From sequence record NC_041917.1: a DNA stretch of 64,000 nt; one strand, written 5' to 3'. Shown piece by piece: positions 32,366 to 61,395 of the stretch. Numbering within the stretch: position 1 is the stretch's first letter; every line of letters starts with the position of its first letter. The translations under genes were made by a program, and so were the position numbers. The notes beneath the pieces are model-generated. The model was not told the DNA's origin. It made no database searches and saw nothing but the letters and a program-made list of their open reading frames with translations.

Positions 32366-32768
32366 AAACTTTAGTACATTAAGAAAAACAGTTAATCGTG
32401 GAGATTATTGTTATTTTAAACTTAATGATTATTATGAGATTAAATGTGGTGATGATTATTTGGTTCAATTTAAGTATAAACCAAATAGTCAAGATTATTA
32501 TTATATGAATTATGATTATAATAATGATTCTGTTATGTTTTATACAACTAGAAAGTATTCTGGTTATTGGAAACATTCAGCACCTGATAATATCATAATA
32601 TTTAAGAACTTAACAAGGTTATGTACAGAGGAAGGACATTTTCAGGAAATGACCAGACAGGACTTGACAGATTTTGAAATTCCTGATATAATTTCCTTAT
32701 TGATGATGGGAAAAGCCATCGTTGACAAAACTAAGGAATATAGAAATGTCGGAACGTCCAGTACTTAA
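32322..32768 (+). CDS. hypothetical protein, EExxFQ paralog family
   Basis: CTEEGHFQEMT motif. Confidence 0.7.
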   Translation: MTWKKINEVVGRFYKNFSTLRKTVNRGDYCYFKLNDYYEIKCGDDYLVQFKYKPNSQDYYYMNYDYNNDSVMFYTTRKYSGYWKHSAPDNIIIFKNLTRLCTEEGHFQEMTRQDLTDFEIPDIISLLMMGKAIVDKTKEYRNVGTSST

Positions 32769-33177
32769 TTATAAATGTTACATTCTTCTTCGTGAAGATC
32801 TTGACATGCCGCAAGGTAAATTTGCTGTACAGGTAGGGCATGGTTTAGATCAAGTATGGCCTCTATATATGGACTACAAAGAACGTAGTCGTAAAGAGGA
32901 TAATGAAGATTTAATCATGCCTGTTTCTAACTTTGAAGGTTGGTATAAAGAAGGTCGTCGCAAGATAGTACTACGCCTTAAAAGCGAAGACCATATGAAC
33001 AAGATTAAAGAAAAAATTCAGGCTGAAATTGATTCTAATGAATATCATCCTGGATATTTTGTTCATGATATTTTTGATTATGGTTTTAACTTCTTTGATG
33101 GGTTAACACAAACTGGCCTTATCATTTATCCGAACCAAACAGAAATTGCAGCAGTAAAAAGACTACGATTGTGGTAA
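32746..33177 (+). CDS. peptidyl-tRNA hydrolase 2 (PTH2)-like protein
   Basis: YILLREDLDMPQGKFAVQVGHG, RKIVLR, D.G..T motifs. Confidence 0.8.
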   Translation: MSERPVLNYKCYILLREDLDMPQGKFAVQVGHGLDQVWPLYMDYKERSRKEDNEDLIMPVSNFEGWYKEGRRKIVLRLKSEDHMNKIKEKIQAEIDSNEYHPGYFVHDIFDYGFNFFDGLTQTGLIIYPNQTEIAAVKRLRLW

Positions 33178-37199: not shown

Positions 37200-37210
37200 C
37201 AGAATACTGA

Positions 37211-37460
37211 CCGTTGTTGGGATGTTGGCTTAGAGGCAGCAATCATATAATGAGTGTCGAGAACGATCCGTAATTGGTAAACGTACCACAATGACCAATC
37301 GTATAAGTTCAGGGGAAGAAAAGACCGGATACAGTTATGTTAGTACGGTATGCACGGGCGGCGTATACTTAATACAGGAAAGGTAGGTGGTACTACTTTG
37401 TACTGATAAATGCTAACATAGACCCTTAGAGACTTTGGCGTAATAGCACACCATCAACGG
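37211..37460 (+). ncRNA. ncRNA containing a split mimic of the 23S rRNA L11-binding (H43-H44) domain
   Basis: GGATGTTGGCTTAGAGGCAGCAATCATATAATGAGT ...182 nt... GCGTAATAGCACAC, closed by CCGTTG/CAACGG. Confidence 0.75.
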
Positions 37461-37492
37461 CTTTTTAATTAAAATAATATATGGTATAACCT

Positions 37493-37825: not shown

Positions 37826-38079
37826 CAGTACAAAAATTTGAAAAGTTACCTATCCAGATTGATGCCCTTGAATGGACTGGTAATAATCTTAAAGAGTTAA
37901 AAGCCTTTGCGAGTCCAAAAGAAGTAAAGATTAATAATATGGGTCATTGCAAAATTGAAACTTTAGAAGGCTGGTTAACTGCATCGATTGGTGATATGAT
38001 CATCAAAGGTGTACAAGGGGAAATTTACCCATGCAAACCTGATGTGTTTGCACTAACGTATCGTAAAATTGAGGAATAA
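37822..38079 (+). CDS. widespread conserved phage protein of unknown function
   Basis: IETLEG..GD.IIKGV.GE.YPCKPD.F..TY motif. Confidence 0.85.
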   Translation: MTVQKFEKLPIQIDALEWTGNNLKELKAFASPKEVKINNMGHCKIETLEGWLTASIGDMIIKGVQGEIYPCKPDVFALTYRKIEE

Positions 38080-38082
38080 AAA

Positions 38083-38421
38083 ATGACGCACTAGAATGAT
38101 AAAACTTGGATCTATGTATTTGTTCGTACTGATTTACCAATCGAACAAGTTGTAGTACAATCAAACCACGCCGCTTATGAAAGCGGATTAGCATTCGAAA
38201 ATAACAGTACTGAGACTAGTTCTCTAATCGTTATCTCGTGTAAGAATAAACATAAGTTACAAAAAGCATATGATGAACTCCAAGCTGAGGGTATTGATTT
38301 AATTCAATTCCATGAACCAGATTGGGATTATGGTTTAACTGCATTTGCCAGTGCTCCAGTAACCGCTGAACAGCGTAGTATCTTCCGTAAGTTTCAACTT
38401 TTTCGTGGAGGTGCTAAATGA
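38083..38421 (+). CDS. PTH2-like protein with in-frame TAG at codon 4 (readthrough candidate; missed by ORF track)
   Basis: SD GAGG + ATG-ACG-CAC-TAG, then 108 open codons with YVFVRTDLP..Q..VQ..HAA and FHEPD..LTA motifs. Confidence 0.75.
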
Positions 38422-38984
38422 TTTATCCTAACACTTTCGAAGAATTGCTACAAGTAATGCAAAAAACTGAGCAAATGAAAGGTCTTAGTGTTCATGCACA
38501 TGGACTTATGGTTGTTGAACAGTATAAAGTACTAATTTCAGAACTTGACACTGGATAGGGCGACCCTATATTACTTGAGGTATATGGTAAAATTAAAGAT
38601 AAGATTTTATCAGATGATATTGTATTACGTTACCAAGAGTTTCATGATTGTGGTAAACCAATATGTCGTGTAGTTGATGATGAGGGTAAAGTTCATTTCC
38701 CTGAACATGCTAATATCAGTGCAGATGTTTGGAGTAAGCTATTTCCAAATGAAAATGTCATTCAAGAGTTGATGCGAAAAGATATGACTTTCCATGTTGC
38801 AAAATCTGATGATTTTGATACAATATGGCAAGATCCTTTAGCACCTACTTTGTATGTAACTGCATGGGCTGAGATTTTAGCGAACTGTACAATGTTTGGT
38901 GGTCAGGATAGCACTTCTTTTAAAATTAAAAAGAAGAAGCTAATTCAAGCAGGTAAAAAGTACTTAAACTCTTTACCTAAATAA
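38418..38984 (+). CDS. HD-domain phosphohydrolase with in-frame TAG at codon 47 (readthrough candidate)
   Basis: SD GGAGG, ATGA coupling; one TAG at 38556-58, then HDCGKP..F.EHA motif in the same frame. Confidence 0.75.
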
Positions 38985-39026
38985 TTTTAAGGCGGCTACG
39001 GTCGCCTGTTTTAAGAGGTTTCCATT

Positions 39027-39488
39027 ATGGAAAGTAAAAATACTGAAAATGTAATGACTGTTGAAATTTTCAAAGGAGCCACGCAAGAAACTATTTTTGT
39101 GTGTCGTTCACAAGGACAGTACTTTGCACCTGACCAAACGTATGATATTCATGAACATGAATACATCAAACGCTACGATACACATTTTTATCATAAAATT
39201 GATGAAAAGAATTGTCGAGAAAGTCATCGTGAAATCATGTTTGGTAAAGATGGAAAACCTGGATATATCTTTAGTTTAGCTAAAGGTTTATCAAAATCAT
39301 ATAATTTAGGTGAACTTGACAGTATTGTATTCACTTTTAGTGGATATGGTGACTGTACGGGTGAAACCTTTATTGTTAGTACTCTAGACTATGCAGAAAA
39401 GGAAGAATTTCAGCAAATTGTCGATGACAAGGAATTACTCTTTAGTAAGTTTAAAGAAGCATTCCCTGAACATGAATTAAATTTATAA
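39027..39488 (+). CDS. hypothetical protein
   Basis: SD GAGG. Confidence 0.8.
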   Translation: MESKNTENVMTVEIFKGATQETIFVCRSQGQYFAPDQTYDIHEHEYIKRYDTHFYHKIDEKNCRESHREIMFGKDGKPGYIFSLAKGLSKSYNLGELDSIVFTFSGYGDCTGETFIVSTLDYAEKEEFQQIVDDKELLFSKFKEAFPEHELNL

Positions 39489-41665: not shown

Positions 41666-41741
41666 GCCTTTGTAGCTCAGTTGGTAGAGCGGGAATCTCT
41701 AAAATTCTTTGTCGTCGGTTCGAGTCCGACCATCGGCACCA
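41666..41741 (+). tRNA. amber suppressor tRNA (anticodon CTA)
   Basis: stem GGAAT/ATTCT, loop CT-CTA-AA, canonical D and T arms, encoded CCA; two acceptor-stem mismatches. Confidence 0.85.
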
Positions 41742-48566: not shown

Positions 48567-48691
48567 GGCGAGTTAGCTCAGTTGGTAGAGCACGTAGAAA
48601 CCCAAGATTCAAGTACTTGAATCTTACAGCAACAATAACTCATACACTTTTAATGTCGTGGTCGTTGGTTCGAATCCAACACTCGCCGCCA
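48567..48691 (+). tRNA. interrupted tRNA-Lys(TTT), 49-nt insert 48595..48643
   Basis: removing the insert gives CGACA-CTTTTAA-TGTCG; insert = AAGATTCAAGTACTTGAATCTT + ACAGCAA; encoded CCA. Confidence 0.8.
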
Positions 48692-61081: not shown

Positions 61082-61382
61082 TGATTGGAAAACTATACAT
61101 AATGTATTAAATGAGTACTACACTTCTGGTGAAGATGCTTTACATTATGGAAACGTATATTATGAGTACTGGATGCACTATTGCACCTTTATGGGAACTA
61201 GCTTTAACTTTACGGATGAATACATTCAGTTTGGTGAAACACGTTCCTATATAGATAAAGTACTTGATGAAGAATCACATTTTCAATTAAGTACTGTGTA
61301 CAATTTCTACGATCTAACATTCGAAGATATTACAGCACTTAAAGAAATCTATATATTCAAACGCGGGGAACCTACACCATAG
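61047..61382 (+). CDS. hypothetical protein, EExxFQ paralog family (ends in TAG)
   Basis: LDEESHFQLST motif; stop TAG lies in the terminator hairpin. Confidence 0.7.
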   Translation: MLMRVKHNLSIDDWKTIHNVLNEYYTSGEDALHYGNVYYEYWMHYCTFMGTSFNFTDEYIQFGETRSYIDKVLDEESHFQLSTVYNFYDLTFEDITALKEIYIFKRGEPTP

Positions 61383-61395
61383 GTTCCCTTTTTTT
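61363..61395 (+). terminator. intrinsic terminator
   Basis: GGGAACCT/AGGTTCCC plus T tract. Confidence 0.75.

Follow-up and report, generated by a model that had tools for sequence, protein, structure and literature searches.

The 64,000-nucleotide window analysed here (the whole stretch of DNA examined, from record NC_041917.1) is 100% identical to the genome of Serratia phage BF, an Eneladusvirus and jumbo myovirus with a genome of 357,154 bp and the standard genetic code; position 1 of the window is position 248,001 of the BF record. It contains two adjacent genes, one for a protein with the fold of the peptidyl-tRNA hydrolase family Pth2 and one for a stand-alone HD-domain protein, each interrupted by a single in-frame amber (TAG) codon, and, 2.7 kb downstream, a gene for a tRNA with the anticodon CUA. 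Judging from comparative genomics, the pair probably forms a suppressor-gated, translationally coupled operon, the full-length products of which would require the phage tRNA(CUA). The gating is well supported, the read-through as such being inferred from the comparisons below. The broader proposal, that many standard-code large phages carry the same three-part switch, in which the suppressor tRNA would serve solely as activator or sensor for two UAG-gated enzymes of tRNA 3' ends, is one that we take seriously while stopping short of calling it probable.

Translation of the HD frame yields 46 sense codons, the amber, a further 141 sense codons and a TAA stop, with the motifs HDCGKP (H76 and D77) and FPEHA (H97) beyond the amber, exactly as described in an earlier reading of this DNA made from the letters alone (hereafter the sequence-only reading). 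That reading had also remarked that the upstream neighbour is coupled to the HD gene and carries one TAG of its own; indeed, the upstream stop (TGA, 38419-38421) overlaps the HD start as ATGA, and the ambers occupy codons 4 and 47 of the respective frames. The leader amber of the upstream gene is followed by 108 open codons that include not a single ATG, GTG or TTG, and the Shine-Dalgarno (SD)-like motif in front of the leader ATG has counterparts in all relatives inspected. In the HD protein of BF, the metal ligands are H28, H76-D77, H97, D122 and H126, in columns that are at least 90% conserved among the 54 members from which the family profile was built. The internal amber sits between the first histidine ligand and the HD dyad; because the first histidine precedes the UAG and the dyad follows it, neither of the two fragments can be an active enzyme by itself. 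In the structural model of an uninterrupted ortholog, this position lies in a variable loop between helices 2 and 3. The residues directly 3' of the TAG align with uninterrupted homologs, the frame staying in phase 0, and the first possible start after it comes only 70 codons on, past the HD dyad. An alignment at the amber column, a check that the sequence-only reading had proposed, finds V, V, S or F in the uninterrupted homologs.

Both TAGs are preserved in all eight diverged relatives compared (loci L010-L017, among them GAP32, CBB and Yen9-04, which are isolates, and four genomes from metagenomes), at a synonymous divergence (dS) from BF of 0.3-1.2. The ratio of non-synonymous to synonymous substitution rates (dN/dS) between BF and these relatives lies at 0.05-0.17 in the 46 codons that precede the internal amber, in the 141 that follow it and in the upstream gene, and the relatives show neither a frameshift nor a second stop. 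Contigs assembled from four independent public runs, one of isolate type and the others from moss, manure and insect-gut metagenomes, do not differ from BF at either TAG wherever these are covered. Neither TAG is a product of decay or of sequencing error, which bears out the doubt that the sequence-only reading had cast on chance decay; the relatives and, where they cover the sites, the contigs of the public runs agree on the presence of both codons.

The rest of the BF genome offers no comparable case. The genome was rebuilt from the public record and each TAG was scored for coding potential up to the next possible start, with a gene model and a coding score that are crude and blind to a leader amber with a normal start at most 12 codons after it. 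The internal and the leader amber (record 286556 and 286092) take the first and the third rank; all remaining matches, the second-ranked one among them, are antisense to an annotated gene, and no other TAG of the 357 kb genome is a credible in-frame amber. A control pattern, defined as an SD motif, an ATG, at most five codons, a stop and at least 90 open codons with no start within the first 10, occurs in the window only at 38092. TAG is the rarest BF stop by the crude gene model (32 of 566), and the back-up stops of TAG-terminated BF genes are no closer than those of other genes. Genome-wide recoding was considered and rejected: reading TAG as sense raises the open reading frame (ORF) coverage of the window by 0.069, against 0.100 for the TGA control, and in the 80 related loci introduced below the gain is likewise no greater than for TGA. 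BF uses the standard code, with two exceptions. Read-through fusions at two other TAGs (window 61380 and record 26291) were also discarded, both lying in terminator hairpins that are followed by an SD-ATG. These are genuine stops placed within the 3' arm or the T-run of the hairpin (window 61360-61395; L090:26262-26295), so that read-through would run directly into the terminator.

The tRNA(CUA) gene and the conservation of the arrangement across phages are lines of support beyond those available to the sequence-only reading. The tRNA has the anticodon loop CU-CUA-AA, an ordinary 8-nt D loop and a 5-nt variable loop, and it is kept in the Erwinia pEa phages, Yen9-03/04, CBB and GAP32 (L012). 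Its label 'Pyl' in the ARAGORN output reflects the anticodon only; the BF annotation tables list no pyl genes, and no search aimed at them was made. A look-alike among E. coli tRNAs, sought as a guide to the inserted residue, was limited to one weak match to a plasmid tRNA-Arg, and among the 29 tRNAs of BF there is no convincing paralog, the best being tRNA-Met with 75% identity. Neither these tRNA comparisons nor the variable residues in the amber column point to a particular inserted amino acid. The BF genes outside the window include those for a tyrosyl-tRNA synthetase (gp125), for a tRNA nucleotidyltransferase, for a Thg1-like tRNA-His guanylyltransferase, for a polynucleotide kinase and for RNA ligases; the first of these enzymes is a candidate for charging this class I tRNA (G1-C72, A73).

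An IMG/VR scan returned 80 related loci of large phages, which fall into 41 clusters (lineages) at 70% identity; around most modules, 6 kb on either side was looked at. Among the phages that also have the gene pair are Salmonella phage Arash, Acinetobacter phage ME3, Ralstonia phage RsoM2USA and Xanthomonas phages Xoo-sp13 and XacN1. In every such phage, the first gene of the module opens with SD-ATG-(1-2 codons)-TAG-A; counting BF, Yen9-04, CBB and GAP32 with the five just named, nine isolate phages have the leader amber, and their hosts belong to seven genera. In the 80 loci, the gate usually takes the form SD-ATG-(1-3 codons)-TAG-A, after which no start codon follows. One or both genes contain an amber in about 38 of the 41 clusters (37 by automatic count, 38 with the fusion cluster L042), and a start-proximal amber with no start before the conserved domain is present in 44 of 62 Pth2-like and 28 of 80 HD matches. 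In several clusters an internal amber falls in the same loop of the HD protein as in BF. The control pattern has TAG as its stop in 40 instances, TGA in two and TAA in one, and the base after the leader TAG is an A in 71 of 88 cases; TAG-A is said, in work from 1983 ascribed to Bossi and to Miller and Albertini, to be the best-suppressed context in E. coli. Five loci that had seemed ungated turned out to have the same amber leader on a more canonical Pth2 paralog. At one metagenomic locus (L029:5460-5545), the Pth2-like frame lacks a start, and an SD-ATG begins a 10-codon ORF in a different frame, with TAG as its stop; this may reflect an indel in the assembly or a form of the gate that depends on frameshifting.

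The tRNA accompanies the module as well. Within 6 kb, tRNA-CTA is the commonest tRNA, with 55 genes in 48 of the 80 loci against 27 genes for the next anticodon, and it is often the sole tRNA near the module; in Arash and ME3 it lies 0.5-0.8 kb from the gene pair. These tRNAs amount to 48 distinct sequences with varied acceptor stems and the common loop CU-CUA-AA. The ungated lineages L063 and L081 and phage RaK2, admittedly a small sample, have no CTA tRNA nearby, and RaK2 is also without the HD gene. No third conserved protein partner was found near the module, a Thg1-like gene being present in 11 loci only.

Existing annotations obscure the pair. In BF, RefSeq splits the HD gene into gp515 (46 amino acids) and gp514 (70 amino acids), and the genes are missing or fragmented in the annotations of Yen9-04, CBB, GAP32, Arash and RsoM2USA too. 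In Arash, the GenBank record labels the tRNA-CUA as tRNA-Phe (L009:20862-20936) and cuts the Pth2-like gene to 50 amino acids; in RsoM2USA the Pth2-like gene is unannotated (L006:74-403), and in XacN1 the start of ORF364 is annotated 3' of the leader amber (L097:950-975). Such missing, fragmented or misplaced annotations are attributable to the amber gate itself.

Table 1. Features of the module and associated genes (window coordinates unless marked as record)
Feature	Position	Strand	Basis
Shine-Dalgarno-like GAGGAA, 6 nt 5' of the ATG at 38083	38071..38076	+	read in sequence
Pth2-fold gene, 112 codons including the amber, absent from the RefSeq annotation	38083..38421	+	translation, fold
Leader amber, TAG as codon 4 (ATG ACG CAC TAG AAT)	38092..38094	+	read in sequence
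Stand-alone HD-domain gene, 188 codons including the amber	38418..38984	+	translation
Internal amber, TAG as codon 47, context GGA TAG GGC	38556..38558	+	kept in 8/8 lineages
tRNA gene, anticodon CUA, class I, CCA encoded	41666..41741	+	ARAGORN; Rfam tRNA 60.1 bits
Canonical PTH2, RefSeq gp529 'peptidyl-tRNA hydrolase'	32746..33177		
BF tRNA/RNA-enzyme genes (loci L090-L092)	record 65811-67073, 106350-107462, 84109-84879, 38429-39355		

Recognition of the HD protein by standard domain models is marginal. Neither of the two BF pieces matches any Pfam family at E-values up to 1, PF01966 included, and PF01966 is recorded on one of the 120 homologs listed; the uninterrupted ortholog of ME3 scores 23.7 bits with the NCBIfam HDIG model, below the cut-off of 27.6, and the NCBIfam CCA-enzyme model TIGR02692 is matched with an E-value of 1e-4. 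The family corresponds to phrog_14850, of unknown function, and all its database homologs are called 'hypothetical'. When the family profile was compared with the PDB, the sole match was the CC-adding tRNA nucleotidyltransferase of A. aeolicus (3WFO-3WFS, residues 276-359), with which it has the motif HDxGKP...GK..F..H in common. The AlphaFold model of the ME3 ortholog, predicted with a local distance difference test score (pLDDT) of 97, is an all-alpha HD fold, the full length of which aligns with residues 248-443 of the same enzyme (VIA Z 13.4, the best match by fold), followed by the HD phosphohydrolases PhnZ, 1xx7, PgpH, YfbR and OxsA (VIA Z 8-10); a structure search of Swiss-Prot with this model likewise placed CC-adding and A-adding enzymes at the top. 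The nucleotidyltransferase (Pol-beta) head of class II CCA-adding enzymes is not present in the phage protein, which by sequence and model amounts to the HD region of a CCA-type enzyme standing alone, with all its metal ligands intact. The kinship suggested in the sequence-only reading is therefore upheld by profile and fold alike, although the HD region without the head makes the phage protein a domain homolog and not a member of the CCA-adding enzyme family. The HD domain of E. coli Cca reportedly acts as a 2',3'-cyclic phosphodiesterase, 2'-nucleotidase and phosphatase, a result that is credited to Yakunin et al. in 2004.

The upstream protein is recognised mainly through its structure. Its model (pLDDT 92) retrieves only Pth2 family members among the top 12 PDB matches (template modelling score 0.65-0.80, probability 1.0), and the family profile matches Pth2 (2ZV3) with an E-value of 3e-7, the motifs VR.DL...Q..HA and T-A being common to both; the scores with Pfam PF01981 (17.2 bits, cut-off 23) and NCBIfam arch_pth2 (13.3 bits, cut-off 82) are below threshold. 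In place of the aspartate of the Pth2 DAG motif, the family has an invariant glutamate, Glu74. Work on S. solfataricus is said to have assigned a catalytic role to this aspartate and to the lysine of the G-K-G-K loop. BF has a second, canonical PTH2, with a normal SD-ATG and no amber, so that the phage possesses one gated and one ungated protein of this fold.

Several features of the surrounding DNA may be recorded here. Two small genes 5' of the pair lies a 290-nt stretch (37200-37490) that is free of ORFs and higher in G+C; its 3' part (...GACCCTTAGAGACTTTGGCG...CAACGGCTTTTTAATT) recurs in CBB directly 5' of the Pth2-like gene. The stretch has no Rfam match and folds no better than shuffled sequences (z -0.72). 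Rfam models applied around the module at a permissive threshold detected tRNAs only, and a promoter and terminator scan of the same AT-rich DNA was uninformative. A sigma-70-like 11/12 match (TTGACA, 16-nt spacer, TATATT) extends across the internal TAG at 38545-38572 and is probably due to chance, 30 such matches having been found against about 23 expected in this AT-rich coding DNA. Just 3' of the HD stop, a hairpin of AGGCG, an 8-nt loop and CGCCT followed by GTTTT (38990-39017) may be a weak terminator that closes the operon; it is not among the calls of the terminator scan. Elsewhere in the window, the Rfam tRNA model matches 48567-48688 and 54006-54078, neither of which was called by ARAGORN; the former spans 122 nt, a length compatible with a tRNA that has an insertion or intron.

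Taken as an amber-gated operon, the module would work as follows. Ribosomes would start at the SD-preceded ATG at 38083 and, in the absence of a working suppressor, would terminate after three codons, a cheap off state. With the suppressor, the 112-residue Pth2-fold protein would be produced and ATGA coupling would lead ribosomes into the HD gene, where the second UAG would have to be read as well. The pair would be made only once the phage tRNA has been transcribed, processed and charged and is able to outcompete release factor 1 (RF1). Since both frames are interrupted by UAG and need tRNA(CUA) for their decoding, this tRNA would act as a dedicated trans-acting translational activator. The lack of any other amber client in BF makes it look like such an activator rather than a general decoder, and the location of the ambers at sites where any inserted residue would be tolerated fits a regulatory rather than a coding role. 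As to the products, fusions of the HD and Pth2-like domains occur in several lineages and in both orders (Xoo-sp13 and XacN1 have fused genes), so that the two most likely act jointly on tRNA 3' ends, by deblocking or healing them. For the purpose of the gate, we favour an interlock or dosage coupling, by which the tRNA-end enzymes would be tied to the phage's own supply of working tRNA.

A number of observations weigh against this interpretation. The evidence for read-through is that of comparative genomics, and the proposed purpose of the gating goes beyond the present results. A canonical start follows soon after the TAG in 16 of the 88 leader cases (6 Pth2-like and 10 HD), for instance in XacN1. 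In 32 of the 80 loci there is no CTA tRNA within 6 kb, and that of Xoo-sp13 is about 207 kb away. The acceptor stem of the BF tRNA(CUA) has two adjacent mismatches, U4.C69 and U5.U68, which could impair the tRNA; they are shared by BF, Yen9-04 and CBB, while the other stems of the tRNA show compensatory changes, and in GAP32 the stem is fully paired. Lastly, alignment to 2ZV3 indicates that the lysine-bearing GKGK loop of canonical Pth2 is deleted in the Pth2-like family, which renders the hydrolase activity of these proteins uncertain.

The sequence-only reading had gone as far as proposing an amber-gated operon for tRNA rescue. The gate has stood up, with a linked tRNA-CUA and an amber in about 38 of 41 lineages, while rescue is still conjecture for a protein that lacks the lysine loop. 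In its general form, that proposal would give the suppressor some other primary role and make the pair a feed-forward clean-up device, recycling peptidyl-tRNA and damaged ends that arise from read-through and non-stop stalling. The Pth2 fold and the resemblance to the HD region of CCA enzymes would suit such a task, and so would the rarity of TAG as a BF stop. General read-through is nevertheless of no evident benefit, TAG-terminated BF genes have no closer back-up stops, and BF already owns an ungated canonical PTH2, the gated protein being the one without the canonical loop; we consider this explanation unlikely.

A little less likely again is negative feedback, in which the enzymes would disable the suppressor tRNA, or all tRNA 3' ends, and so cap read-through at a low set-point. 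Such a governor would account for the tight linkage of all three parts, for enzymes that are both of kinds acting at the tRNA 3' end and for ambers placed where suppressor activity is sensed directly. A conserved pair of small enzymes is, however, not expected to single out tRNAs as diverse in their acceptor stems as the 48 distinct CTA sequences, and a suppressor whose only clients are its own governors, as seems to be the case in BF, brings no net benefit. Both this and the clean-up role were ranked below an interlock or dosage coupling because each is circular unless the suppressor has another, unseen benefit.

It is improbable that the TAGs are simply real stops, the first ending a three-codon minigene leader from which translation re-initiates in a non-canonical manner, and the second dividing the HD gene into two polypeptides or leaving a 46-residue peptide. 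Minigenes do interact with peptidyl-tRNA hydrolase, and the codon after the leader TAG is ATT, ATC, ATA or ATG in 38 of 88 cases. That codon is AAT or AAC in BF, CBB, GAP32 and Arash, however; in BF, none of the 108 codons after the TAG is a usual start and no SD motif precedes the first ATC. For the HD gene, re-initiation would have to skip 70 codons and the dyad; the metal ligands are split by the TAG, and the residues behind it align with those of uninterrupted homologs. Real stops would also leave unexplained both the preference among stop codons (TAG:TAA:TGA, 40:1:2) and the linked tRNA-CUA.

Bypass or frameshifting at the stop, after the manner of a T4 gene 60-like take-off or the early in-frame stop of prfB, seems very improbable. 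Its attraction lies in the GGA TAG at codons 46-47, the same as at the take-off site of T4 gene 60; yet the frame continues in phase 0 into residues homologous to those of uninterrupted relatives, there is no GGA landing codon in the next 50 nt, and other clusters have CCN-TAG instead. Pseudogenes or errors of sequencing or assembly, to which the fragmentary RefSeq annotation might point, are already contradicted and can be practically discounted, given a dN/dS of 0.05-0.17 on both sides of the amber at a dS of up to 1.2, a TAG kept in eight of eight relatives, and its occurrence in four independent runs and nine isolate genomes.

The amber-gated operon resembles several known systems in part. 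To our knowledge, no clients of the suppressor tRNAs of standard-code phages have been identified to date. In the code-15 phages (crAss-like, Lak and gut phages), too, a phage tRNA(CUA) reads in-frame UAG in a host with the standard code; there, however, UAG is found in hundreds of mostly late genes and the code-11 coding density collapses, in contrast to two genes in the 357 kb of BF, and the present ambers are confined to codons 2-5 or a surface loop of clients that are tRNA-end enzymes encoded beside the tRNA gene. Recoding has been proposed as a timer of phage gene expression, in work concerned with genome-wide reassignment (bioRxiv 10.1101/2021.08.26.457843; PMC13037316). The gene for release factor 2, prfB, similarly has an early in-frame stop (UGA at codon 26) in a gene for translation and an expression level set by competition at that stop, but it employs a +1 frameshift and senses its own product, whereas the BF frames stay in phase 0 and would sense a separate tRNA that competes with RF1. 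The minigenes of the lambda bar regions (AUG-AUA-stop, toxic in pth mutants) share with the leaders a strong SD motif, an ORF of 2-4 codons and a link to peptidyl-tRNA hydrolase; in the phage leaders, by contrast, nearly every stop is a UAG with A as the next base, the enzyme frame stays open beyond it without a start, and a cognate suppressor tRNA is linked.

Among the enzymes themselves, the class II CC- and CCA-adding enzymes (3WFO-3WFS; E. coli Cca) supply the best profile and fold match in their HD region, which there is joined to a nucleotidyltransferase head, while the phage HD protein has a Pth2-like domain as its partner, encoded next to it or fused to it. Pth2 proper, of archaea and eukaryotes (MJ0051, AF2095 and human Bit1/PTRH2), has the fold of the phage protein but differs in possessing the GKGK loop and the DAG aspartate, the loop being deleted and the aspartate replaced by glutamate in the phage family. 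Engineered amber-gated circuits, in which a gene is on only with a dedicated tRNA(CUA), are the closest in logic, the phage case being natural, ancient and widespread. No prior description of the arrangement was found in full-text literature searches, the coverage of which leaves out most subscription journals. The XacN1 genome paper came near to it with an in-silico read-through of 18 amber stops that gave no target for the two suppressor tRNAs of that phage (PMC5852040). The fused HD-Pth2 gene of XacN1 carries an SD-ATG-AAG-TAG leader, and this candidate target was missed because the annotated start comes only after the leader amber.

The arrangement thus provides a candidate target for orphan suppressor tRNAs and describes a natural, portable, tRNA-dependent expression switch. 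It also draws attention to an uncharacterised pair of enzymes, putatively acting on tRNA 3' ends, that is relevant to the take-over of translation by phages and to tRNA-targeting defence and counter-defence, and the gate may be an evolutionary intermediate, a minimal form on the way from the standard code to complete reassignment of TAG. If many large phages do carry the three-part switch, the long-noted 'orphan' suppressor tRNAs of jumbo phages would be explained, and the tRNA would be a regulator that signals the condition of the tRNA pathway of the phage. An interlock of this kind could keep back the tRNA-end enzymes, whether their task is repair or an attack on host tRNAs, until the phage tRNAs are functional.

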